Origin: Oculina patagonica
Lineage: Eukaryota
DNA: 64,000 nt
Reading direction: 5' to 3'
Assembly: GCF_052425735.1 (NCBI RefSeq)
Contig: NC_135759.1
Span: forward strand, 23,188,001 to 23,252,000
The notes under the pieces are model-generated. The model saw only the letters and a program-made list of their open reading frames with translations. It ran no database searches and was not told the origin of the DNA. A program made the translations under genes and the position numbers. Positions 11,846-29,400 of this stretch are shown here, one piece after another (the stretch's first letter is position 1; every line of letters begins with the position of its first letter).

Positions 11846-14800
11846 TCATTCCACGATTAGTTCTCTCCTTCGTCGTATGTGGCTATCCAGATGCTTGGCC
11901 TGTTCCATGAAATCCGCCTCCCACACAAGTGTGTAACCAAACTCGGAGTTGGGCTTTTTCCACTCACATCCATGCCTCTCAATGAACCCCATACCCCCGG
12001 TCAACACAAGTGAAGTGGACTTAGTCGACGCAGAGCCTCGTGTGTCCGCCAGACAGCGCACAGCGGACACGTGACGGTGGAGGAGGGTCAAAGGCTTTCG
12101 CGTTGTAGGGTCTACGAGTACCACGTGACCAGTGCCCAGTCCCACCCATAGGGTCTTGTGTGACAAGAGAAGGCTGACAACGCGTGTTTCGCGTAAGTTA
12201 CCAGTATACCCGCTGTCCCTAAGAATTGTCAGACAGTCAACAGAACCAAGCAGCTTGGCTTTAGAAAAGTCCCAGCACTCAACCACTGGACTGTCTCGAG
12301 TTGAGATCCAAACAGACGTGGAGCCCACAGCGATGTTCAAAACAAGTCCCTTGGCTCTGTCCTCTACGGACCAACGACGCTCTATCTCGATATTCACGTT
12401 GTCCTTGATTCTGAGCACGACTACTTCGTTACCGCATCCACAGAACAACCTCTTCTTGCCAACAGCCATGCAGGCCAAGGGGTGCGCTCTACAATCCTCA
12501 CAGGGGGTACCCTCGATCTTGCTGTGACACAAGTCAAAAAACCTGGGCTTGGCATCTTCTGTCTTGACACAATGGGTGTCATAGACAGCTAACTGGCCAT
12601 TAGCAAGTCCTGCCAGTACAACATCCACGTCCACATTGTAGTGCCTCAGACAGAGAACCGCGTCAGGAAGCCGGGGCAGAGAGAACTGGCACTTGTGGTT
12701 CCACGCGTCAAACACCCAGATCCTACCGGACTGTGTGCCAGCCAAGACAATGTCGCTATTCACTGCTGCGATACTCTTTACTCGTCTGTCTCGGATGAAT
12801 GTACCCGTGCAGCCCTGGGGAACAAAGCACAAAAAGGTTTAGTCGAAATGCTTTTTAGTCGCAAACGTGCACGAGATTTACTTCTATTGATCTTCATCTA
12901 TGCACAGGAAGTAACTTCAAGATGAAGAACAATTGTTACTCCGTTGGTAGCAAAAAGGTGATTTATTCCGAAGGTTGTGGGTTCGAATCCCACCGAGCTT
13001 AAAAAATATTTTTTCTGCCTCATGTGATCCCCCCACATTTCCTATTACCTTACAAAAGTTAACACTCAGTACCAAATTCACTGGTTTATTTTAGCACTAA
13101 AATTGCCACAGAGTTAATTATCTAATTTTGCGTCACCAAATAATGTTATTTTGCAATATAAATATTTCTGCAACAAAACCCACATATAAAAAACAACTTT
13201 CATCAGAAATCCGTGTATTCAAAACCATCTGTTAAAACTCAATATCACTAGGGTATGGTAGCGGTTTGTAGCTGTGCTTTGTCATTGGAATCTTTTCAGG
13301 TCAGAGTTGAAAACAAATACTCTCCTTTTCTTTTGGTTCTAAGAAATTCTCACGCCATCAAAGAGTAATAATTTGTTCCTTCAAAATGTTAGGGCAACTT
13401 GACAAAAGGCTGGGAGTGAGGGGGGGGGGGGGGGGAACCCACGATGAGCAAGAATCCTTTCCAGGGGACCGAAACCAAGGTAAGTGTAAACTTATTTACC
13501 TCGACTCCCATGTCTGACAGGTCGACAATGGTGACTTGTCCACTGAGATCATCTGACTGTCCACTGCCCACCCACACCTCCAGTTTAGGTGTGTCCTTTT
13601 CAGTGAAGTGACGGACAGTCATGCACTCGACTGTCTGTCCCTTAGACACGGCGATATCACGCTTCAAACAGATCAGCTCAGGGTGACACAAGCGCGAGTA
13701 AGCCTGTCAGAAAGAACACGAAACGTTTAGAGGTGGGAGAGTCTTGAGCCTTTGTAACCAATTTTCTACCTCTTCCTCACCAATAAGGTGAAAGTTCATA
13801 TTTAATGCAAACAAGAAATACTGTAGCTAAAGAAGGTTGATCAGCATTGACCTTTTTTACTGGCTACTACGTAGACTAATAAAGATCATCAATTACGGAC
13901 AAACAGAAATTCCAGAAACAATCAGTCGAAAAGGCTCTACAAGTCTGTAACAAGTGCTATTAAAAATCCCAAATTCTCGCTAAAGAAACGTAGGTGGCTG
14001 CACGCGTTATCAGTTAACGACAGGAACAACATATACAGAAAAGAGCAGCATGGACACAGCAGGAAAGCGGCTTTTCAAACTGACAAGATGACAGGGTTCA
14101 AAATAGCAGCCGGCTGTCGGGGTAGCCGACACTTTCAAGACACTTGCCGCTACTTTTCACCAAAGAAATAGAAAACATCAGCCTTAATCGACCAACTAAA
14201 TCAAAGTCGAGAATAAACATTCAATCAGACAATAAAGCAACACAGGGCAGAAAGTGCGACCACTGATCGCTAAAGCGACCACAATTTTGGCGACAAACTC
14301 TGGTTTTACTTTTAGTCGCCAATTGCACTTTCTGTGTTAAGATGAATAACAGGCCGCCCCACCTTCTCAGGTATTGTGTCCCTCCAGAAAATTATATTAA
14401 AGATCATTTCTTCTCAAACATTCAAAATAAGAAAAGAAGTCACATTGCTCCAATCCATTCTTTTGCATTGCCGTAAAAATGACACCGGAAACATATGGCC
14501 GACGGGAAACGCCCCAGAATGCATCTGGTACATCATGATGCAGATGGAGGTAAATGCATAGCTCTCTAACAGCCGGAAAAAATGAGCCTTGACAAAAAGA
14601 GCCGACAAATTCAGGCTAAAAACGAAAATTTTATTTTGAACCCTGAAGATGAAAAGAATATATCATAAAACTCCTAATTACATTTATTCGTTTATGGGCT
14701 AAGGCCAGTTTTTTCTGTCTTTTTCTCATAAAGATTGTATTGGACCTCTTTTACCTGGATATTAAATATTGCACTTGTTGCCACTAGAACTGTCTGGTTG

Positions 14801-17800
14801 CTTAACAGTGGCGTAGCACAAGAGATTGTTATTATTGTTGTGTTTTTTTTTAAAGAAAAAAATTTACTTCACCTGTTCAGCTGTAACTCTTCTATGCGGT
14901 TGAGGCTCAAGAGCATGCGCAATAAGATCCGCAAGGTCAGGCCACGGAGGGCAGTCTGATGACGTAATAGGGTCCAGCGCTCGTCCTTTCAACACAGCCG
15001 CGTCCAGCTCGTGCCGGAAGCGCAAGTCTTCAAACGGTTTGGTTCCGCCGGTCACCAGCTCATAAAGGAACATGCCAAACGAGTACATATCAACTTCCAT
15101 GTTGTAGGCGATGTCGCCTCGGGCAATTTCGGGTGCTCGATAGCCTGGCGTACCCTCAGTGGCGGTCAAGCCGCAGCGAGTGGCGTACCGGGCGATGCCG
15201 TAATCAGAGATCTTGGCGTTGATGAGGTTGGCGAGGGAAAGGGAGAAGATAAGGATGTTATGGGGTTTGAGATCACGGTACACAATCATGTGATGGTGCA
15301 AGAACGCTAAACCTTCTGCAACCTAAAGAAAAGAAGTACAAATTTGTGAGCTCAGATTTTGAGGCCACTCGTTGAGAAATGGCTAAATAATTTTACAACT
15401 ATGTCTGCATGTGTTCGTCAACTTAAGGCATGCTTTTGAGCGTAACATTACGACTCTGTGCAACTTTGGCTTCGTATATCTCCATCTTTTCAACAGTACT
15501 CTTTATCTCATATTTATATGCAGTCAGGGGAACACTGATCATTAATTCACGTAGAGATAAAGAGTTTTCGTGAAGATGATTTTTTCAGTCAACAATGACA
15601 CGAGCATGCTCAGTCATCCCGGTATCTGGGAGACCATGTTCGAATTTTTCTTTGTTCCATGCTCGTGTCATTGTTGAAAAAAAAACATCTTCATTATTTA
15701 TCACCGAGCTTAAAATTGACCATCTTGTTTTTTACTACAAAGAGTTTCATGTAATCAGAACGTGGCAGTTACGTCTGCATGACGTCACAGAGCTACGTCA
15801 CGTTACTTAGCAACACTGAAGAAAATCACAGGCTTGGTCTATTACAGATAACGAGGCTCGCTCGTCCCGTTGGCTTGTAATAGAATTTAAAAGGATTGGA
15901 AGTTGCTTCTGCGCACCTGTAAGGCGATTCTGTGTTGAATTCCTCTGCTCAGCGCCTGCCCGCTGTTTAGAAGCGTGCTCAGTGATCCCAGCGGAGCCAA
16001 CTCCATTATCAGAGCCCACGGTTTCACGCATGCGCCCACCATAGAAATAATGCTCAGATGACGTAGCTTTCGTAAGAACATGACTTCCTGGCGCAGTAAG
16101 GTGTGAGGATTGCACTCACTTCCGGAATGAAACACCTGTACGAAAACAAAACGGCCTACTATTAGCTTAGTAAATAAAGAAAAAATAATAATTTGTAAGC
16201 TCGTTAGCGAAAAAAAGATGTATAAATCATCATGCCATGAGCGTGGTATAAGGAAAATCTGAGTCCCCGACGGGAATCGAACCCATGGCCTCCCAAACAC
16301 ACGACGGGCGCTCTTTCCACTGAGCTACGGAGAGTCTCTTGGTGAACCAGGCCATTTACTAAGTTTAAACGTGACACGCATCCGACATACTGCTAGGATC
16401 AGCAATGTCGAGAGAGTACTGTATGGCGATAGATAAAGAAAAGATAGTAAATTAATATTTTTTTTTTCTTTCAAGGTGAACACATAGCGAGTTCCGAAAT
16501 TTAACTGAAGCACCACAATCACAAACCTTAGCGGCAACGGACTTTCCATGATAACAGGCCCTGTACACTGCTCCATAGCTGCCGTCTCCAAGCAACGAGG
16601 TACGCGTGACATTGAGAACCAATTTACTCTCCTCAATTCTGAACTGTTCGCCGACATCTTCCATGATCACATCAGGCGCTATCTGTCGCAGGGACACCAG
16701 CAGTTTCGTGTTGGGACACATGATGTATTCATTGTCACTCGCCTTAGCTATGGTGTCAAGGGGGAAGGTGTGAGCATCGTCTCCCTTGCACACTGGACAG
16801 ACGGCCTGCTTCCTGACAAGAGGTTGCCCTTCCTGTGGATCCACTCCACCTAAACAGAAGAGATTCACATGTCATTACAAACACAGCCTGGTACCCATTG
16901 TATCTGTGAGCTGATATCAGGAGTACACGCTGCTTTTGGGAGCGAAGACAGAATAGTCCAGGGATCATTAGCGTGCAAAATTTTATGGTACACGGTAGTG
17001 CACGGCGTATGCTATATCTGCAGCTGGACCGGAGGGAATGAGCCGCGTTCAGCGGCAGAAATGGATCCTATAAGTCCCACTCCTGCCTGGCTCGTGAAAA
17101 AAGCTTTGCAGTGGGGAAAACAGTTAAAAAGGAACAACACGGAGATGGAGAGTGAGCCAAGCTGAGAAAACACTGCTCGTTCTTTACCCATTACATAGCC
17201 TGTTCGCAGACTAACAGCGATTCTTGCCCAGGAAGCACATACAGTACGTAATTTCACAAGGGACTTTCCACAAGAGAGATTTCATCGACATAGTAGTGTA
17301 GATGCTGGTAATTTACTATGCAAGTAGTGATCTGAAACACTTACACAAGTCTGGAAACCATTCCTCTAGCAGTGTATCCAAATGATCCACCACATGAGCT
17401 AGAATTCTAGCTCCATGCTTTGTACTAGGCGTTGTAATCACCACGGTGTCTGCACTGGGATTGGTCAAACCGTGTGAGATTACAAAGAATGCTTGCTCTG
17501 TCCAGAAGACAAAAATCCCTTCGTTCCACTGTTGGACTTGTGGTTCACGAGGGCTCTCCAGTTGAGCTCTGTGGTCCATGTATAAGTTCACCACAAACGT
17601 TTGCACCCGGGTTATGAGACGAGGCCACAGACTGGGCGGTAGATAAGCCAGGCTGTACACACGGTTCACAAACACGTTACGTCCCGGGTTTGGGATCTTG
17701 ATCGAGGGCTGTTTGTTGCTGAGCAAAGATGGTAAAAGATACTTGTCGTCTCTCAGCGGGAGTGCAATACAGTAGTGTCCGAGTAGCCTGTAAAGCAAGA

Positions 17801-20800
17801 AAAACTTCACTCGCACCAAGTTCAAACTGGCACAATTAAAAACAGAACGCTAACGACCTAGTCTAACTACGCTGCGCTTGAAATGTGTTTGCCAGGTGAT
17901 GAGCTGAACACATTCACATGGCGGGTAAGAAGGATGCCAAACCTGTGGAACATAAGGACACCCGAAAGAGTGATATTGGATTCTACTGACATATAGATTA
18001 CAGGGCCATAACGAGACTTTTGCCATAGACGAGGCAAGAATTTGTTGGGGGTTCTGGGGGCAAACCCTCCAGAAACATTTTTAAAATCTAGAAGCTCCGA
18101 AACTCTTTTAGAGACGTTTTTCATGACGCATTTCTTGAGAAAACTCAATCTTGTTCAACTGCGCATTATTGCGCATATTGGGCAAAAATCTAGACGAGGC
18201 AAGTGCCTCGTCTTGCCTCTTGCTAGTTACGGCCCTGGATTAGATCGATTATAAAAGAAAGCTCACGCATGCATTCACTTATGGGAGGTGGCGGCAATGA
18301 CGCTTTTAAGCGACTGTGTCACGGCTAAGTTAATTTCATGTTCTCAAATTTTGCCATAAATGTTTGCAAAGAAATTAATTCTATGATTCTAAATGACAAA
18401 ACTATAGCTTCCTTGCAGCCAAATGTGTCTTCCGGGCGTAATAATTAAAAGTTACGAGCAGAAAAGATTAACTTTGAAAACTGTTCCGACGGACCATTTT
18501 TCAAAAACCCATATCCCAATCCGTTTCAACTTAGTCAATTTTGGCTATCTGTACATGTACCTTCTTTTGCATTTGGTGTGTTATTTAAATATTCCTTCAC
18601 TGTTTTAAGAGGTTATTCTATATATTTAAACGAATTTGATGGTCATTTCCTAGGTTTGGCTAAAATCTGTGACACAATCCCTTTAACTTTTATCTGTAAA
18701 TTGACTCATGATGCCTAGTTTATAGAAAAGAACGGAAACCAATAAATTTATCAACAGAAGGCACCAGTAGTTGCGACAGACATCTTACTTTAATATCTGT
18801 GGCATGAGATCTGAAGTCAGGTTGACTACACCACTTCCATCACGGACCAATTTCTCAAGTTCCTCCAATCCAAGGATGCCATTGCTGTTCTTACTGTCCT
18901 TCCTTGTCGTCAAATGAGCAAACAAATGGAAAACCCACTTGGGATCAACAAATAGGAGATCGTTCAACTGGCACGCTGGATCATCCACATGGATGAGTAC
19001 TCCTAAAGGAAAACAACAGAACAAATATATGATGGGATGGACCCTTATTGAAGTTATGTACATGTACCTCTGGACGTTTTCAGTAGAGAAGTACACATTT
19101 TAGACATTTACGAGCAATAATGTAATTTTATGAGGCACAAACAGTAGAAAATTGATATCACAGTATAAGAAGTCATTGCCATTTTCGAGATGGCTGCTGT
19201 AGGAGGTTTAATAACAAAAATCTGTGGCTGTGGGACACAAATTCTGGATCAGAAAGCAGCTCTAGCAAGGTCTAACATGAATGGATCGCTGCTCTTTGAG
19301 AGAACAACCGAACATACAACAGGAACAATGTTCCTAGCCCTAACAAGCAATAATAAGCTGCTAAACTATTGAAAAACTCCCTGTTATAGAGTGAGAGATG
19401 GTCGTTATAGTGGAGGGTTGACTGTATGTCATGCAACATGAAGTTGAAGTTAAACTAATGATTCACAGAAGGACATGCAGTAAGGGTACCTTACCTGCTT
19501 CACTCATGAACCTAATGGCTTGTTCAACCTCAGTATCATCCATGAGTATTTCATTATCTAGGATGAGCTTTCGGATGTTGGCCATTCTCAGGATTCTTGG
19601 TGACTCCTGTCCTTTGGTGAGTACATGATGCATGATCAGCTCCTGTAGACGTACAAAGTTCTGTGGCACTCTAGGACCAACCAATGAATGACCTTTGCAC
19701 TTGCATCTTGTAATCAACTGCATGATCCGGTGGCGGAGCGATTTCACTCCCGAGGTCTCTTGAGTGCAGTCGAGGACCACATGGCTCTTGACCTGGGGGA
19801 AGCCAGCACCAGCACACATGCTAAGGGCTCTTACCTTGATCTCCTCGAGTAAACCAGTGACCTGGTCCTTCGGCACCTTATCCTTATGTGTACCCACAAG
19901 CATGATGGATGCCTCTGGTGCACAGGCATGAATGTTGAGGAGCCAGGGTTTGAGAGCATCTATCTCGCTGGTGCCTTTGCTTACATCATAGACTGCCAGA
20001 AACAATGTCCTTGATGACAGGAGGCACTGATAAGCACTGTACAAGTCATTACGTCCTTTGAGATCCCATGTGCTGATGACATAGTTCACGCTCTTGCGGT
20101 GGCACACCTTGCACTCGGCTTTGGTGTCTCTGACACACCATTCTCTCATCATAACATCGTGGTGTGGTCCTGTAGCAACGTCTTCCTGCAGCTGGTTCAG
20201 CAAGGTTGTCTTTCCGCATCCTGCCTGACCAACAGCAACTAGCTTCATGCGATAGTAAGGCACAGAATTCTTGAGCCTGGAGTGCAAGAATCCTATGAGC
20301 TCCTGGGCTCTGCTTTCCAGAATGGCTGAATCCAGATCAAGCTTGAGACCATACAGCTGCAGGTCCCATAGACTGGACAAACCTCCCATCTCATCTGGCA
20401 AGTGCGTGATACCAGTGTTGCGACTCAAGTTAAGGGAAGTCAGGGATTTCAACTCACCGATTCTATTTGGTACTTGCTTCAGACAGTTGTCGCTCAAATT
20501 CAGTCTTTCCAAGTGTGCCCAACTCTCTACACCCTCCAAGGAGAGCTTTTTTATCTTGTTATCAGCTAGAACAAGCTCTTTCAGTTGCTGCGTAGACCAG
20601 GAAATGGGAGGAGGGATGTCCTCCAGATTATTACTGGAAAGGTCCAAAATTTTCACGTTGGGAAGTGTGAGAAGAAATCGAGGGATTGAAAATTGTTTCT
20701 TTGAAGATTTCTCTCCAAGATTATTCTTGTTCAACCGAACTGTCTTCAAATTTGTCAAGGAAGGGGCGACTGCTTCAGGCAATGTTGTCAGGCAATTGTT

Positions 20801-23800
20801 TGAAGCCAAAAGCATCTCCAGAGCAAAACATTTTGAAATGAATTCATGTGGAATCTCTGTGAGCTGGTTATTTGACAAGTCTAGCGTTTTCAGACGCGGC
20901 AGTTTCAAAGCAGTATCTGGCAGCTTCTTCATGTTATTGCCAACCACATAAAGGCTTGTTAAGGCTGGAAATAAAGGCCCAATCCACTCTGGAAAGCAGC
21001 TTTCCTCGTTGTGCGACAAATTCAAGTGCTCAAGCATGTCACTACTCCCCACAGACTTCGGTTGAGGACAGGACATCTTTATCTTGTTGTGTGACAAGTT
21101 TAGGACTTTTACCCTAGTCTGGATAAAGGCGTAAGGAAAACTCGAAAACTCATTGTGACTCAGATTCACATACGTTAGATCAGGCATTGCATCACTAAGT
21201 AATGACGGCGGAAAAGATGACAAGTGATTGTGACTCAGGTCGAGCTTCTCGACTTTTGCCAAATATGCAAGAAAGTGAGGAGATGCTTCTGCCAGTGCTT
21301 GCAGATTTGAGATGTTGTTGCTGGAAGCATCAATTAAACGCACTGTCGCATTTGCAGAGATGGCTCTGGTAGACTGCCTTCGCTTTCGTCTTGAAGCAAA
21401 GGACTCGAATGTCTTTGCACTTGTGCCTCTTCTGTCTGAACGCTCTGCACATTGGTCGAACAATCTCCCACTGTCATACTCACTACAAGCACTCATGGAC
21501 CGTACTCTGTAACCTTGTTGCTGAACCTCCCAACTGTACACATAGCTACGATTAGGCATTTTAAACACACCGGGCAGCTGTACATCTTCTTCAGATTCTG
21601 TTATTCCACTAACCTGTTCAGGGTCAGTGCAGGGTAGTGGCGAGACTTTGCCAGTATAGCAAGAGGCTTCTAGGCTGGTAAAGGGAGGATTTATGTCACT
21701 GGCTGCACGCCTCTTCAACATTGGTCGCTGACGCTCAGGCAGGTGCTCTTCAAAGGATCGCCTGTGTGCACTCCTGGGTAAAATGACGCAGTTCCTGTCT
21801 GAGAAAGGAGACACAACACGAGGATCATGTGAGCTGTAAGGGAAGGCAGCTCCACTAATGCTACGAGCCCGTAATGGTGATTCCTCAGTTAACTCGGGAC
21901 CATTCAAGTCAATGTCGGAGTCAGAGTCTGACTCATTGAGTGACTCAAGTTCAAGGACCACTGATGTATCTGTGTCAGAAGTGATGCTTGTGTCATCCTG
22001 CCATCCAAAGCTACCATCCAAAGACTTGTTTAAGGTTGATTCACTTCCTCTTCTTCTCAGGCGATTATTCAGTGTGGTTCTTAGTTGCGTCGTTCTTGCT
22101 GCATCGTCAAGGAATTCAGACCATCCAACACCAAGGACTGGTGGAGAGTACTTATTACCAGCCAGAGAAGGTGACATCCATTCCGGGAGCAAATCACCCA
22201 AATTAAGGTTACTGAATGCAATGATACCAGCTTCTTTATCATGGCCAAGATGCTGCAAAAGCAGTCCCACAATGTTACTATAACCCATCTCAAGAGAGAG
22301 CCTTAGTGCACTCTGAATGTCTGTAATTCCCTGAGTGAGAAGGAACTTGACCATTTCTTCCTTGCCATTCTGGCAAGCACGGCAAAGTGGTGTGTTCTCC
22401 CCATGACCGGCATTGACATCTGCACCCTTCTTTATCAGACAGTCGGCACCTTTAAGAAGGCCTCCAGCACATGCTGACAACAGCATGGATGTCTTCAGAT
22501 TTCGTTCCCAACCGAGATACCGGATGCATTCGCTGGCCAGAAACACTAGCTCTGCTTCTTCAGCAAAGTTCTCCATTATGAAGAAAAGTCTTTCATGTGC
22601 ACAGTTGTTTACCAAAATTGTACTCTTTCCCTCATCTATTTGAGCAATAACAAGCATAGCCACACAGCCTTCTGCTTGGACACCTCTATCGTCTGGAAAC
22701 CGACACATGGCCTGGATGACGGCTGACACTGCCATTTGACAATGATCATCAGACAACAAGGGTGCCAGCACTTGAATAAGAATGCATCCTTTTTGTTGTA
22801 TAGCAGGTTCTGACTCGTGTCTGGTCATTGCATTAAAAATGGTCTTCACACCACCATGATCTGCGCTTTCACAAACTAAGAGATCTGGAATTTCTTCTGC
22901 AGCAGTAAGCACACCTGAAATGTCATGCCAAGGACAATCCATTAATCATTTTTTAAACAAAATTAGTTTCTAAAAGATACTTATAAAATTATTTCTTTGA
23001 ATCAAGTGACTCCACGAGTGTCCTTGAGGATTTGTTTTGTTTCTTTTAGGTTGGGGTCAGTACCATACATAAATGGCGATTCTAGTATTTTATTGGGTTT
23101 ACATGAACATGGCCTAATAGTTAGAGCATCCAATTTGTGAACAGAAGTGAATGGGTTCGCTTCCCGTCTCGAATTCAGATTTTACTTTGTCCCACGCTCA
23201 TGACAAAAGAAAACTAAATCTTTCTCATTAGATAAACATTATTTCTGGGGAAACAAAAACATTATTTCCTTGTGTTCAACTTTTTTTCTTTGAGCAACTT
23301 CCACTCCCCACTTCCACCCTCCAAGGCAGCTTGTAAACACCAAAAAAGACATATAAATACTCACCCAAAGCCTCTAATGAGATCTCTGCCAGGGACATCT
23401 GGTCTGGAAAGTTGCTCATGGCATTCAGAATCATGCTATGAATTCCCTCAACAGCACTTTGATGCCAGACAAGCTCAACATCTGTTGCCAAGCAAGCGAT
23501 CAAGGCTATCGCTTCTTCTTGGACACCAATGTGATCTGCAAATCTACACAGTCAAAAAATTAACTTAATAAGACTTCTTTTTCTAATGTTTAATGTTACA
23601 TGTATGAACGTTCTTTATAAAGAAAGCTATCATCTGTAGATGCATTCGTGAATGTTGCATTTAATAAAGCCACATAATCATGCATTGTTAGAACTGCTCA
23701 ACAGCTATCTACATGCAGCCTTCACTTTCAACATTTTGTTATTAAATGAAACAAAAATTAAGTGTGCAAACAGGGATGTTTAAAAGCAGGGCTGCAAATA

Positions 23801-26800
23801 ACAGTTGGTCATCAGATATTGGCCGACCAAAATTTACTCATGTCCGATGAAATCCCAAGTGTGGTCAGACATGATGTCTGGACATTTTTGTGATAGTAAA
23901 TCATTTTATGGCAACAATGAATAAAGTTCAACTTTTGTTTGATAATGTCCGACCAAAATACATGTCCTTTCAAGTGAAAAAACTTATTTGCAGTCCTCAA
24001 AAGCTATCCAAGATTTGACTAAGGCATACTACAGGTTTCTGTCGTTGTTATAAAAACCATCAACTGTTTACCTTCGAGTACATCTGAAGACCAGCTCTAA
24101 AACTCCACAGTTAATCATGAGTTCCTTGTGACCACATCCTGACAATGACAATCCTCGGAGTGCTCTACAGCCCCACTGCTGAACCCCTGCTTCTCTTTGG
24201 TGTTGTTTCATTGCACGGACAATGTACAAGTACAATCCTTTGGATATTAGAGACTGAAAAATAAATGTTATGAAAGTAAACATCTGATGAATAACCACAC
24301 GATAAAGGCTCCACTGCAAGAATTTTTCCCTCATGAGTTATTTTGCGCAACAAGCTGAAAATGGACTCTCCAGTTCTCATACAGTCATTTTCCATCTCAT
24401 TTTATTGCTTGTTGACTGGCAAGATCTAACAGGAAACGATGAATTGCTTTGCATTCCATAGAGACTCCCAAGGCTATACAAAAATAGAAAAGATAAGTAA
24501 ACACTTTGTCTTATTACCTCTCGCAGAGAGCTGGAGTTGTTGACAATGGATGCTAAGACTCTACATGCTGACTGGCAAAGCTCTGGGTCATCTATGTGTA
24601 ACATCAAGGCAGCCATACAGCACCTATGTAATGGAATAGTGCTACCTGGTTCATCACCTATTTCATCCAACACATCAGGACAAACATCTATCAACTCTCG
24701 CAGGGCATGGCAGGCTGCATATAAGACTTCTGGTTTGTCACAAAGACTTGTCATGGCAGTAAATGCTTCTCGAGTCCAGCTGTAGTTCTGTAATCCTAAA
24801 GACAAGACCATAGATAACTCAATTGAAGGTGCATTACAGAGTAGTGACCATCACTATTTTATCTTTTTTTTAAAAAAAGAGTGCATAGTCCTCTGCCTTC
24901 TAGGGATTTAATTAACACTTAATTGGCTGGGCTATGAAAATGTACCAGTACAAGCCTTGAGAATATTTTTGTATGCAAAGTTTGTTTTTTGCAACTTACT
25001 AAAAGAAGGCATTGAATCTCCCGTGTGACCACCCCTCAAAAGTGATCACTTCCTGTAATACTTTCAAACTATCAAGTGTCGCAAGTTTTCAATACCCTCA
25101 TTCAATGCCACAATTATGCCTTCAACCATGTTTACTCTCAAGTTAGATAACAAGCAGTATGTTTTTCTACCAAAGCTGAGAGAGGCAAACGTAACATATT
25201 ACAGAATAGCAAGTGACAAAACTACAACCATTTTAGTAAAAATAGAGCCTACAGCTTCAATAATTTCCACTTTATAGTTATTTCCTATTTGCTCTATTCA
25301 GTTTTGAGAAAGGCAATACTGAATGCTTGCAGTTTATTTCACGCTAGGTACAGTTCACAAGAAATATTTTGGCTTGTGGCAGAGTACCTGCCCGGGGGAG
25401 GGGAGGGGCACACCCATATATGAGCTATATAGTATGTGCCGCTGTGAAGGGCATGGTTTTCAAGCAGTTTAGTCTGGGATAGGGTATAGAATTCAGAGAG
25501 TTTTGGTCTAGAGAAAGGTAGCATTTGCCGGACGACTGATCGGTGGTATGACGAATTAAGTCCAGAATAGGAATAGAAACTCAGAAGAGAAAGAGGCTTT
25601 CCTGAACGTAAATAAAATCTTCACAGCATCGTTGTTTACACATCATTTTCCATTAGAACACTGATAGTGATACAGTTCTAAAAAAAATGCAAGTCTGGGA
25701 TAGGGTAGGGATTTTCGGTGTCTAGTCTAGTATAGGGGTGCAAAATCAGCTGAACATGGTCTGGTATAGGGTAAGGGTTTTAAATTCCCAGCAGCACACC
25801 CCCACCCAAAAATATACAGGATTCCCCCCCCCCCCCAGAGTACCTGCCTCTGCAACTTTGATTTGAATTTACAACGAAGTCTGTTACTTACTGTCTTGCA
25901 GCCTGTTCTCTAGTGCCTCAGTGAGAAGAGCTAAAGCAGTCAAGCCATTTTTCTGAACATCAACGGAATCTTTAAAATTCTGTAAAGCACGCAGAATAAC
26001 AGCTAGGACCACACTCTGTTGAACTAAAATCTCTCTGTGAGGCTCAAAGGCTGCAAGAAGGACCAGAAGTCGGCATCCAGCTGCTTGCACTCCAGGGCAA
26101 TCACAATGTTTCTTCATTGCTTCTAAGGCCACAATAAATGTTCTCCCACGAACAAGAGTACAACAGTTTTTGTTTGAAGATGCTAGAACACACATCAGCT
26201 GTATACCTTGCTCTTGAATCTCTCCTTTTAAATATAAAAGAAGAAAAAATAAATGAAGTAAAAGGGTATATACATAGAATGCAATGTATATGGGCGAAAA
26301 GGTAAGGTTCTGTAAAATTCCAAAAATAAGACCCCCCCCCCCTCTCCCCCCAAAAAGCCCCCTTAAATCTCAGATGCCAATATCCTTCCAGAAATAAGCC
26401 CTGCTGAGCTTGCAGCTTTTCCGAGTATAAGCTCCTATTGTAGGGCTTGTTACATTGTATGCAGATAGTTTATCTGGACGGATGATCTATCTGTTTGCCC
26501 CTATTTACAGCTATTTCGAGAAAGGTTGTCGGAAAAAAAAACATCAAAGTGCACGCGACAAGACCGAAAGGTGGTCTGGGTATTCACTGGAATTTTGCAT
26601 ATATTGGCCTAGAGGAAATTTACAAGTTTGTATTTTTGCACGTGGAGAATTTGTTTCTCTTCTCAGGAGGCCTATATCTGTCAGGGCTTCTGAAATTTCG
26701 CACGGTCGCGGAGCCGCGAAATTCAGGTATATCCGCGAAATCCCGCGAAATTGACAAAAACATATGAAATACCGCGAAATTCGCTAGAAATTCGACCAAA

Positions 26801-29400
26801 TACATGTCAGTTCAACATATTTGAAACTTATCTTGGCTGTTGGAGCTGTTTACTTTGCCATAAACGTGCAAATTTATCTTGAAATTTCGTCAATGCCACG
26901 AGTAAACATCACACCAAACTACCAGGCGTTCTTAGATTGATGTTGCAAAAACCTGGGGACTGGTGGCAAAGAAGACTTTTCGTTGACACTACACGAAGTG
27001 AAAGAAAACTGCTGTCTGTAGTAATGCAGGCACACGTTTAATCGTACACGAATGAAGACACAAGAATGTTTTGATTTCACAGATGGATTTAAACCTTTTA
27101 TCTGGAACAATCTTACCTTGGAAACTGCAAAGCAACACAAGAGAGCAAAATGGAGAAAATAAGTTTATTGCATTACTGTTTTCGGCTCTGAATTGCAGCT
27201 GAAAAAGGAGGTTAACCGGCCAAGCATATTTTCGGTAAAGCTATAAGCTTATTGGTTTTTCTTTCCACTTGAAACAAGTACAGTTGCCTTCAGAACTGTG
27301 TTGGATGAACTTTTGTGGTTTTTTCTTGCCCTGAATTTGACATCCTTCCAATATTTTTGTCAGGAATCTTTCTTTTTTCTTTCTTGTTTGCTTGTCAACG
27401 AAAATTTGCCCCGAAAATTTCCGCGAAAATCCCGCGAAATTGGCCGTTTTCTCCGCGAATTTGTCTCTTCAAATCTCGTGAAATTTCACTTTTTTTCCCG
27501 CGAATTATCAGAAGCCCTGATCTGTAGCTTTACTTTTACTGTCGCATGTCTTTGAGTGAGGAAAAATTCTTCTGAACTTCAGAGGGTCTAAACGTACCTT
27601 GTTTCTACATGTCTGAAAAGAAAGAAAACCTGAAAATTGCGCTTATTTTGTTGTTATATCTCATTAGTATTTAACACGTGCAGTAGCTCAATATGTCTAC
27701 CCATACTACAGTAAAAACCCGCGTGTAAGAACCTGCTTTTTTAGAGTTTGGCAAAACAGGTTCTTATATTTTGGGGTACTTACTGGCATTTTTTAGCTTC
27801 CCTGTGCAATTCTTGATCTCTAAAGACATCCTTTTTGATAAAATACAGTTATTGTATTATAAATAAAATAGTTTAACCCCACATATAAGAACCTTTTGGG
27901 GTATTGAGGAAGCAAATTTCTGCCAGGAGGTTCTTCATTTCTAGGTTCTTACACGCGGGTTTTTACTGTACCTTTAGGGATTGGCTTGTGCAGTTTTGTG
28001 CTTTTTTCCGACAACGTTTCTCGAAATAGCTGTATACACAGACGAATTATCAGACAAACTAAAAAATGCTTGCCTAATTAAAATGCAAGTTTGTCCAGAC
28101 GGATCATCCGTCTCTAGTATAAATCAAGCCAATTATAATATTATTACGTGACTGTATTACATCTATGCCAACTATCCTGAATACAGATGGAATCTCCGGG
28201 TCTCCCCTATGGGTCATTAACTCTCCCAGATACCAAGGAGAATGCTTGAAATATGTGTTTTTGTTTTCATATTTGACATGCTCTAATTTTTACTCCATTT
28301 GGGGGTCGATAAGAGGTACCTTTATAATGCAGAATTGGCTATCTCCCAGATTTTATTTTTTTTAATAGGAGGCATCTCTGGTATTATTTCTAGCAGAAAA
28401 TGAAAGGTCATCGTATCTTTAAGGATGGAAGCATGAAAAATAACTTTATATTGCTAAGGTTTCAAACACAGTCCTATATATAAAGACAAAAAGGATCTTA
28501 TATAATTAATTATATGTTTGTAGACACAATATAGAAAACATATTTTACTGCAAGTTCTGTTAAGTTGTTGAGAGCAGAATATAAGCTTTATTGTAAAGGC
28601 GTATGTCAGGTTAATCTTTTAAACAAACCCTTGGATAATAATCCGACTTCTACTGTTTGTTTTCAAAGAAAACGAGGAACACAAACAATAACTGACTCAC
28701 CTGATTTAGCGTGTCTCTCCATAATTTCCACCACCATGCGATATTTTTTTCGCGAATTTTTCACGTCCATGTTAATAAAATTCTCTTGAGCTGACGGATC
28801 GTCAGACAGCAATTGCGTTAAAGCTTCGAACGCAGGAATATAAAATTCCTCGTCCTCACCAAAATGGCTCATGGCAGAAAGAACTGCATCTACAGCTGCA
28901 CAATCGAGAGCATCGCTTCTTGTCCTTGCAGTTGTACAAAGCGCAGACAATAACTTACAGCCTACAACTTGGCACATTTTGTCAGCAAACCTTTCCATCA
29001 TTTGCAGAATAAATCGTTGAGTGTTTTTATCCTGCAGTTCAGTTCTAACTTTCGAGCTGAGCTCCATAAGTCTGGAGAGCACATAACACCCGTGAAGCTG
29101 AATATTGTAGTTAGTTTTATAATCACGCATTGAGGTCAGGACTGTACAGTGAGCTTGCTCCGTTTCAAGAGCGTCTGGATCGGCATCAACTTCTTCATCG
29201 TCTAAACCGTCGGCCAGTAAACTCATACAGCTCTCCACTTGACCTTCGTTAGAATTATTCTTGATGCAGCGAAGTAGCTTAAGCAATTCTTGAACATTTT
29301 CCTGGCCTGGTTCGTCTTCCAAGGCCATCGGAGAATTCGTTCCGTTCAAACTGTCGAGCAGTCGGAAGCTTTGCTCGCAATCAGGATAGATTAGGTCCAT
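11846..29400 (-). CDS. LRRK2: Leucine-rich repeat kinase 2 orthologue (ARM-ANK-LRR-ROC-COR-kinase-WD40 Roco protein), 13 exons, about 2637 aa
   Basis: Exons 29400-28701, 26224-25892, 24795-24518, 24253-24072, 23543-23365, 22914-19495, 19002-18789, 17787-17345, 16849-16527, 16135-15917, 15322-14873, 13703-13500 and 12814-11846. All GT-AG and phase-consistent, 7914 nt in total. ROC P-loop GQAGCGKTT and LVGTHKD. Kinase LLGDGSYGAVY, YRDLKPHN, KISDYGIA, EGTPGYRAPE. N-terminal armadillo-like repeats and the C-terminal helix (HLDSHIRRRRELIVE) point to LRRK2 rather than LRRK1. The start could be a later ATG in exon 1. Confidence 0.93.
12935..13010 (+). repeat. tRNA-derived repeat head (SINE-like), not a tRNA gene
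   Basis: B-box GGTTCGAATCCC with a degenerate A-box. No acceptor or anticodon stem. Confidence 0.5.
14092..14645. mobile_element. CAGGG-ended non-autonomous DNA transposon with a 7-bp TSD
   Basis: AAGATGA|CAGGGTTCAAAATA ... TATTTTGAACCCTG|AAGATGA. Confidence 0.85.
16160..16450 (-). mobile_element. tRNA-related interspersed repeat (SINE-like)
   Basis: On the minus strand, A-box TAGCTCAGTGG (16327-16317) and B-box GGTTCGATTCC (16283-16273). Related decayed copies near 15580-15725 and 23110-23215. Confidence 0.65.
18001..18237. mobile_element. CAGGG-ended MITE with a 5-bp TSD
   Basis: GATTA|CAGGGCCATAAC ... GTTACGGCCCTG|GATTA. A partial homologue lies at about 40975-41160. Confidence 0.8.
18310..18682. 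mobile_element. TTAA-flanked (Kolobok-like) MITE
   Basis: TTAA|GCGACTGTGTCACGG ... CTGTGACACAATCCCT|TTAA. The interior is homologous, inverted, to 55180-55280. Confidence 0.65.
23787..23998. mobile_element. CAGGG-ended MITE with a 5-bp TSD (family copy 1)
   Basis: AAAAG|CAGGGCTGCAAATAA ... TTATTTGCAGTCCTC|AAAAG. Homologous to 34457-34709. Confidence 0.8.
25391..25836. mobile_element. CCCGGGGG/poly-C-ended element flanked by a 10-bp direct repeat
   Basis: AGAGTACCTG at 25381-25390 and at 25837-25846. Internal GTCTGGGATAGGGTA repeats. Confidence 0.7.
26682..27519. mobile_element. CAGGG-ended non-autonomous DNA transposon with a 6-bp TSD
   Basis: ATCTGT|CAGGGCTTCTGA ... TCAGAAGCCCTG|ATCTGT. 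Clustered subterminal CCGCGAAAT motifs at both ends. Confidence 0.85.
27709..27968. mobile_element. 260-bp TA-flanked Tc1/mariner-type MITE (copy 2)
   Basis: TA|CAGTAAAAACCCGCGTGTAAGAACC ... GGTTCTTACACGCGGGTTTTTACTG|TA. Confidence 0.9.

Follow-up and report, generated by a model that had tools for sequence, protein, structure and literature searches.

A cysteine opposite human LRRK2 R1441 is probably the ancestral, fixed residue of hexacoral LRRK2

The window, the whole 64,000-nucleotide stretch of Oculina patagonica DNA analysed here, encodes an LRRK2 orthologue in which a human pathogenic residue stands as the wild type: a cysteine lies opposite R1441 in gap-free alignments. Our comparisons with other animals indicate that this Cys is no mutation: hexacorals (stony corals and sea anemones) have it as their ancestral, fixed residue, which makes it an ordinary lineage difference. 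We consider it very probable that this LRRK2 is otherwise ordinary and that the residue is tolerated throughout its lineage within a co-diverged interface, as a deviation that is compensated or neutral in effect.

The gene occupies positions 11846..29400 on the minus strand, where 13 exons form a predicted CDS of 7908 nt that encodes 2636 amino acids with zero internal stops. Pfam matches in the minus-strand ORFs between 29400 and 11846 comprise ARM_LRRK2, ANK_LRRK2, LRR, Roc, COR-B, Pkinase, and Beta-prop_LRRK2 (E 7e-64), and the domain order of the protein is ARM-ANK-LRR-ROC-COR-kinase-WD40. With the full-length LRRK2-like proteins of amphioxus, hemichordate, and starfish as tblastn queries, 13 collinear blocks span the gene and cover residues 6-2664 of the amphioxus LRRK2-like protein. 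Two full-length cnidarian transcripts encode proteins of 2646 and 2633 aa that are collinear with the model over its whole length, at 72% and 67% identity, respectively. Transcription and splicing of the gene are shown by GT..AG-joined contigs in three runs guessed to be RNA, from at least three sample sets. The P-loop (GQAGCGKTT), the DxxG motif (DLKG), and THKD of the GTPase are intact, as are the catalytic lysine of VAAK, YRDLKPHN, and DYGI of the kinase. The coral protein is therefore a ROCO kinase that is expressed and retains its GTPase and kinase motifs, and it probably works as a normally regulated LRRK2.

All exons lie on the minus strand; the junctions around the ROC exon were taken from contigs of three runs behaving as RNA and the remainder were predicted, those between exons 1 and 2 and between exons 3 and 4 being the least certain. 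Exons 1 to 5 encode ARM repeats. Exon 1 (28701..29400) begins with an ATG at 29400 and has a predicted boundary with the donor GTGAGT. Exon 2 (25892..26224) has the least certain acceptor of the model, any position within 26206-26224 being possible, and the donor of exon 3 (24505..24795) may lie at 24505 or 24518. These are followed by exon 4 (24072..24237) and exon 5 (23365..23543), whose 3' partner junction at 22914 is backed by RNA contig ends. Exon 6 (19495..22914; 3420 nt), which holds the Cys codon, encodes the end of ARM, ANK, the linker, LRR, the whole ROC GTPase, and the start of COR-A; it is spanned by RNA contigs of the runs X4, X6, and X18, spliced at 19495/19002. Exon 7 (18789..19002; COR-A) is connected through the joints 19001->19494 and 17786->18788 (GT..AG, minus strand), seen in three RNA runs. 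Exon 8 (17345..17787) encodes COR-B with the Y1699 equivalent and with EEWFP, the end of the COR-B helix that includes the E1790/W1791 equivalents. Exon 9 (16527..16849) covers the linker from COR-B to the kinase and the kinase N-lobe with the VAAK lysine; its acceptor was set at 16849 because the RNA pieces extend 2 bases (GT) beyond the end of exon 8. The kinase continues in exon 10 (15917..16135) and in exon 11 (14873..15322), which carries YRDLKPHN and DYGI, and is joined through the kinase-WD40 linker of exon 12 (13500..13703) to exon 13 (11846..12814), which encodes the LRRK2-type WD40 propeller, the source of the Beta-prop_LRRK2 match, and the C-terminal helix, with the stop codon at 11848-11846.

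Translation of the minus strand from 19850 to 19960 gives DALKPWLLNIHACAPEASIMLVGTHKDKVPKDQVTGL, in which the codons CAT GCC TGT GCA CCA place the TGT at 19922..19924 (read 19924-19922), corresponding to Cys1554 of the predicted protein. We compared the 279-residue ROC/COR-A part of exon 6 with all solved structures using HMMER, and obtained human LRRK2 chains (E 1e-43 to 2e-45), followed by LRRK1 (2e-19) and small GTPases (1e-5). Since human residues 1414 to 1510 align without a gap, the Cys matches R1441, and the Asn four residues before it stands opposite N1437. The top-scoring PDB sequence, 9oya_B, itself has Cys at 1441. We also aligned 18 full-length LRRK2 proteins with MAFFT, numbering them along a primate LRRK2 (2527 aa) in which W1434 to R1441 are numbered as in human; the Cys again falls in the R1441 column. 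In this alignment the coral protein matches human LRRK2 at N1437, Y1699, E1790/W1791, G2019, and I2020; it has Pro and Glu at 1443/1444, with no Ser, and thus lacks the PKA/14-3-3 site. The original prediction, which placed a Cys encoded by this TGT at the R1441 equivalent, reported the S1444 PKA site as missing, and described N1437, Y1699, and G2019/I2020 as wild type, is borne out on all of these points.

The window gene is a true LRRK2 orthologue. Built from 42 ROC-COR-kinase regions, a maximum-likelihood tree mirrors the species tree and leaves the LRRK1-like proteins outside; this tree comes from a quick search and its two LRRK1-like outgroup rows are long-branched. In it, the window LRRK2 groups with the two cnidarian transcripts and Nematostella LRRK2 with an SH-aLRT of 100, the medusozoan and bilaterian LRRK2 proteins coming next. 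A ROC query finds a single strong match in the 529-Mb assembly, at the window locus, from which we take the gene to be single-copy; no second LRRK2 copy with Arg was found in that assembly, which has two weak ROC-like exons on another contig. Ninety-three percent (93%) of exon 6 words occur in a run labelled coral metagenome, which marks the source animal as a stony coral, a possibility that the original prediction had raised.

The Cys codon is the same in independent samples. TGT is kept in contigs of X2 (an independent DNA run from a coral metagenome), of X4 (RNA from another sample with the same species label), and of X6 (RNA with a second species label), and among the differences from the window in exon 6, all of which were listed for these three runs, none falls at 19922-19924. 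This support comes from assembled contigs, in which rare alleles would be hidden; X18, with a third species label, was left out of the codon comparison, only 2 of its 29 exon 6 differences being listed. A CpG-type variant near the codon, 19872 G>A (Pro to Leu), segregates in X2.

To place the residue among corals, we used relatives that are mostly metagenome or transcriptome contigs, consisting of big-exon ORFs and the two full-length transcripts; among the matches of the protein search there were no full-length scleractinian LRRK2 proteins under species names. The coral metagenomes and transcriptomes provide 31 orthologous big-exon sequences as stand-alone ORFs, at 53-99% identity. Every protein of the window's coral clade (18/18) has Cys, which is also present in the outgroup lineages P0289, P0299, and P0007/P0300 and in Nematostella (P0196). 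The sister coral clade (n=14) has Tyr in eight proteins, His in four, and Phe in two, and Arg occupies the position in 0 of the anthozoan LRRK2 sequences collected. Three changes on 37 tips account for the whole anthozoan pattern. Six separate lineages with Cys all use TGT although their flanking codons differ synonymously, and two relatives have TTT and CAT. The presence of Cys in the window's clade, in the lower-branching lineages, and in Nematostella, together with the lack of Arg among these anthozoans, points to a residue that was ancestral in hexacorals and older than the split of corals and sea anemones.

A wider survey shows that the R1441 position is not specially conserved across animals and that whole clades live without the Arg. 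Among full-length LRRK2 proteins from named animals, Arg is found in mammals, reptiles, amphibians, bichir, gar, most sharks, chimaera, lamprey, amphioxus, hemichordates, molluscs, and nemerteans. Leu occupies the position in all eight echinoderms sampled, which represent all five classes, and in one catfish; Val in four non-catfish teleosts and in Hydractinia; Cys in the two carpet sharks Stegostoma and Chiloscyllium; His in one skate and one electric ray; and Ser in the jellyfish Rhopilema. On a 40-taxon LRRK2 tree, the R1441 column requires 10 parsimony changes among 7 residue types, which equals the median of 176 ROC columns, a rate that is somewhat overstated because the sample was enriched for species with a variant residue. 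On the same tree, W1791 and G2019 show 0 changes and N1437 and Y1699 2-3, and the column of the PKA/14-3-3 site at 1443/1444 shows 17, the most among the columns checked. At the sequence level, the site thus varies freely among invertebrate LRRK2 proteins (Leu in echinoderms, Val or Ser in medusozoans, and Cys, Tyr, Phe, or His in corals). This is the sequence half of an outcome named in advance as speaking against the original prediction, the other half being that a C-to-R swap has no effect.

In human LRRK2, the side chain of R1441 caps the COR-B helix through a bond to the backbone carbonyl of W1791, coupling ROC to COR-B, and its loss is thought to uncouple the two domains and to favor kinase activation (PMC8863276). 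A Cys is incapable of such a bond to the COR-B helix end. That helix end (LLEEWFP) is kept in the coral protein and the Arg is gone, so that coupling between ROC and COR-B in hexacorals would have to use other contacts. Such contacts may be sought within the ROC domain, whose surface around the R1441 position has diverged in all hexacorals; for example, the hexacoral switch II reads WD-L-K-G-R-x-D-L-Y-S-A-Y, as opposed to the almost universal WDFAGQEEFYSTH, and its LYSAY in place of FYSTH could contribute alternative contacts around the Cys. The fixation of the Cys suggests that it is tolerated owing to this diverged ROC background, as a compensated or neutral deviation. This fits the first of the two options offered by the original prediction, a compensated pathogenic deviation, as the protein is a true LRRK2 orthologue and the Cys is its wild-type residue throughout a clade. 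The COR-B helix end was itself considered as a simple site of compensation and was ruled out, EEWFP being conserved.

Switch II (1401-1405) is altered in the non-Arg hexacorals, teleosts, and batoids and unaltered in carpet sharks and most echinoderms, and co-variation between 1441 and switch II, which looks suggestive by eye, is not significant when counted over phylogenetically independent pairs (p about 0.5 with 5 pairs only). We put forward tentatively, and as the less probable case, the broader proposal that hexacoral and, independently, carpet-shark, batoid, teleost, and echinoderm LRRK2 have dispensed with the R1441-W1791 latch and that intragenic second-site changes restore normal ROC:COR-B coupling, for which the coral switch II (1396-1405) would offer the first candidates.

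The second option of the original prediction is a naturally activated LRRK2. If so, hexacoral LRRK2 would hold ROC and COR-B together more loosely, hydrolyze GTP more slowly, and have a higher basal kinase activity than orthologues with Arg, a set point that the animal would use, for example, in the control of phagosomes, lysosomes, or symbiosomes. This reading draws on the helix-capping role of R1441 and the uncoupling thought to follow its loss (PMC8863276), on the retention of the helix end without the Arg in the coral protein, and on the strict conservation of the TGT-encoded Cys in the window's clade. We nevertheless consider it unlikely. It transfers the effect of a human mutant to a protein that is 29% identical, and the divergence of the ROC surface around the site argues that human mutant effects are not transferable. 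L, V, S, H, Y, F, and C occupy the column in other healthy lineages, and the median rate of change looks like relaxed or context-dependent constraint as opposed to a tuned switch. The replacement of Cys by bulky aromatics or His in the sister coral clade likewise argues that no particular chemistry is required. A role in the symbiosome is not favored, given that Nematostella, which is not known to host algal symbionts, has the Cys too.

It is also conceivable, and in our view very improbable, that the Cys was selected as a cysteine whose thiol, being for instance redox-sensitive or otherwise open to modification, would regulate the enzyme from the ROC:COR-B interface. Other LRRK2 cysteines have reportedly been described as acting in redox control of the protein, and both the window's clade and the outgroup lineages keep the Cys strictly. 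However, Tyr, Phe, or His throughout the sister coral clade and Ser or Val in medusozoans argue that the position has no indispensable thiol-specific role, and a partner Cys or motif was not identified. The suggestion that the codon arose by a recent CpG transition, still segregates, or reflects a sequencing or assembly error deserves hardly any weight: CGT to TGT is indeed a single transition and the neighboring CpG-type variant segregates in X2, but no contig of X2, X4, or X6 has CGT, the independent DNA and RNA contigs that agree on TGT include a second species label, and the Cys of all 18 clade members and of the outgroups, the recurrence of TGT in six distant lineages with diverged flanking codons, the Nematostella Cys, and the absence of Arg among the anthozoans collected all contradict the recent or polymorphic origin that had been raised as a possibility.

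With the tolerated, lineage-wide Cys as the preferred reading, little changes for the coral itself: it has a normal-looking, expressed LRRK2 that carries, at the Parkinson hotspot, the residue normal for hexacorals. A small by-product of modest value is the survey of LRRK2 proteins that naturally lack the Arg, which might interest structural biologists working on LRRK2. R1441, treated as a critical latch in the human protein, has given way to other residues in several whole animal clades, and in cartilaginous fishes and corals the replacements include Cys and His, both known from disease alleles. The proteins without the Arg are ready backgrounds for finding the residues that make the latch dispensable. 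Should second-site changes prove to restore the coupling, mapping them would yield natural suppressors of the R1441C/H Parkinson alleles. The survey also cautions against calling single human disease residues in distant orthologues mutations. Our literature search returned nothing explicit on LRRK2 R1441 as a compensated pathogenic deviation, nor on the states in fish or zebrafish.

Compared with human LRRK2 (PARK8), the coral protein has seven domains in matching order and conserves N1437, Y1699, E1790/W1791, K1906, D1994, DYG, G2019, and I2020, at an overall identity of 29%. It differs in its switch II, where LYSAY replaces FYSTH and a Lys occupies 1396, and in the Pro/Glu that stand for S1443/S1444. 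At human position 1441, where we compared the Parkinson alleles R1441C/G/H, the residue of R1441C is identical to that of the coral; in the coral, however, the Cys is the fixed wild type of a clade and not a dominant mutation. Human disease residues that are wild type elsewhere are said to be a well-known general phenomenon, that of compensated pathogenic deviations (attributed to Kondrashov et al. 2002). As in those cases, a human pathogenic allele is fixed here in an orthologue, and the compensating change is a candidate only.

The closest named orthologue is Nematostella vectensis LRRK2 (nvLRRK2), which is sister to the coral clade and 50% identical over its full length. It shares with the coral protein the Cys at the R1441 position and the KGR start of switch II, and differs in switch II (LHHVF) and opposite Y1699, where it has Phe and the coral Tyr. 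The part of the nvLRRK2 study available to us describes G2019/I2020 as conserved and the ROC disease residues as not conserved (PMC11308222); in that part, the study appears neither to name the residue at the R1441 position nor to trace it through corals.

Beyond cnidarians, the Leu of echinoderms, the Val or Leu of teleosts, the Cys of carpet sharks, and the His of the skate and ray resemble the coral case in that true LRRK2 orthologues have a non-Arg residue fixed in their clade, with origins independent of that in corals. The carpet sharks have arrived at the same residue as the coral; unlike the coral, they have kept a local sequence close to that of human (KACASSCPVILVGTH), and their switch II is unchanged.

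Position 1441 of human LRRK2, to which Cys1554 of the predicted coral protein (TGT, 19924-19922) is equivalent, is occupied by a residue other than Arg in the vertebrate LRRK2 proteins P0206, P0351, P0311, P0327, P0024, P0315, P0321, P0348 and P0361. Two carpet sharks have Cys at this site, and the residue of a skate and an electric ray is His, in each case within a near-human local sequence, while five teleost proteins carry Val or Leu, and Arg is retained in bichir and gar. The Cys of carpet sharks and the His of the skate and electric ray represent natural R1441C and R1441H states of vertebrates.

In the coral, the 3.4-kb exon 6 of LRRK2 is open throughout as a single ORF of 1159 aa (window 19463-22942). 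Relatives of this ORF (database entries P0270-P0300) are listed in public protein collections as separate "proteins" of 1120-1260 aa, which are ORFs called on contigs from coral metagenomes and transcriptomes. We reject these entries as separate genes and regard them as LRRK2 fragments. At window 19872, also in exon 6, the DNA contig from a coral metagenome (X2) carries a plus-strand G>A change of the CpG type, which converts CCG into CTG and replaces Pro by Leu at model residue 1571, inside ROC and 17 residues beyond the Cys. At 20218 of the same exon, a plus-strand A>G difference is common to the contigs of three RNA runs, one bearing the species label of the window sample (X4) and two bearing other labels (X6 and X18); since all three have G, the window's assembly holds the minority state.

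Introns 7 and 6 of LRRK2 each contain a stretch (17976-18751 and 19140-19333, respectively) at which every one of the four runs shows contig depths ranging from the hundreds up to tens of thousands, together with numerous short contig pieces, internal joints and indels. Both stretches are interspersed repeats of high copy number, common to the three species labels.

Elsewhere in the genome, another contig carries two ROC-like exon matches with 25 kb between them (G000:C1:2816464-2816619 and G000:C1:2841889-2842041; 48-49% identity over ~50 aa), which probably belong to other LRRK/ROCO paralogues arranged in tandem. An unbroken plus-strand ORF of 247 aa (window 7138-7881) lies a short way downstream of LRRK2, which is encoded on the minus strand. 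The whole of this ORF matches the Rtf2 RING-finger family (E 8e-91), which makes it an apparently intronless replication-termination-factor-2 gene or a retrocopy.

In ROC switch II (window 20040-20090), Arg directly follows the DxxG glycine (KGR), as it does in Nematostella LRRK2 (P0196) and the coral relatives, and further on the hexacoral proteins read LYSAY in place of FYSTH. This Arg matches R1398 of human LRRK2, whereas in LRRK2 of almost all other invertebrates that site is occupied by a Ras-like Gln (AGQ). In the column of human Y1699, the Nematostella protein has Phe, and the coral, like most animals, has Tyr.
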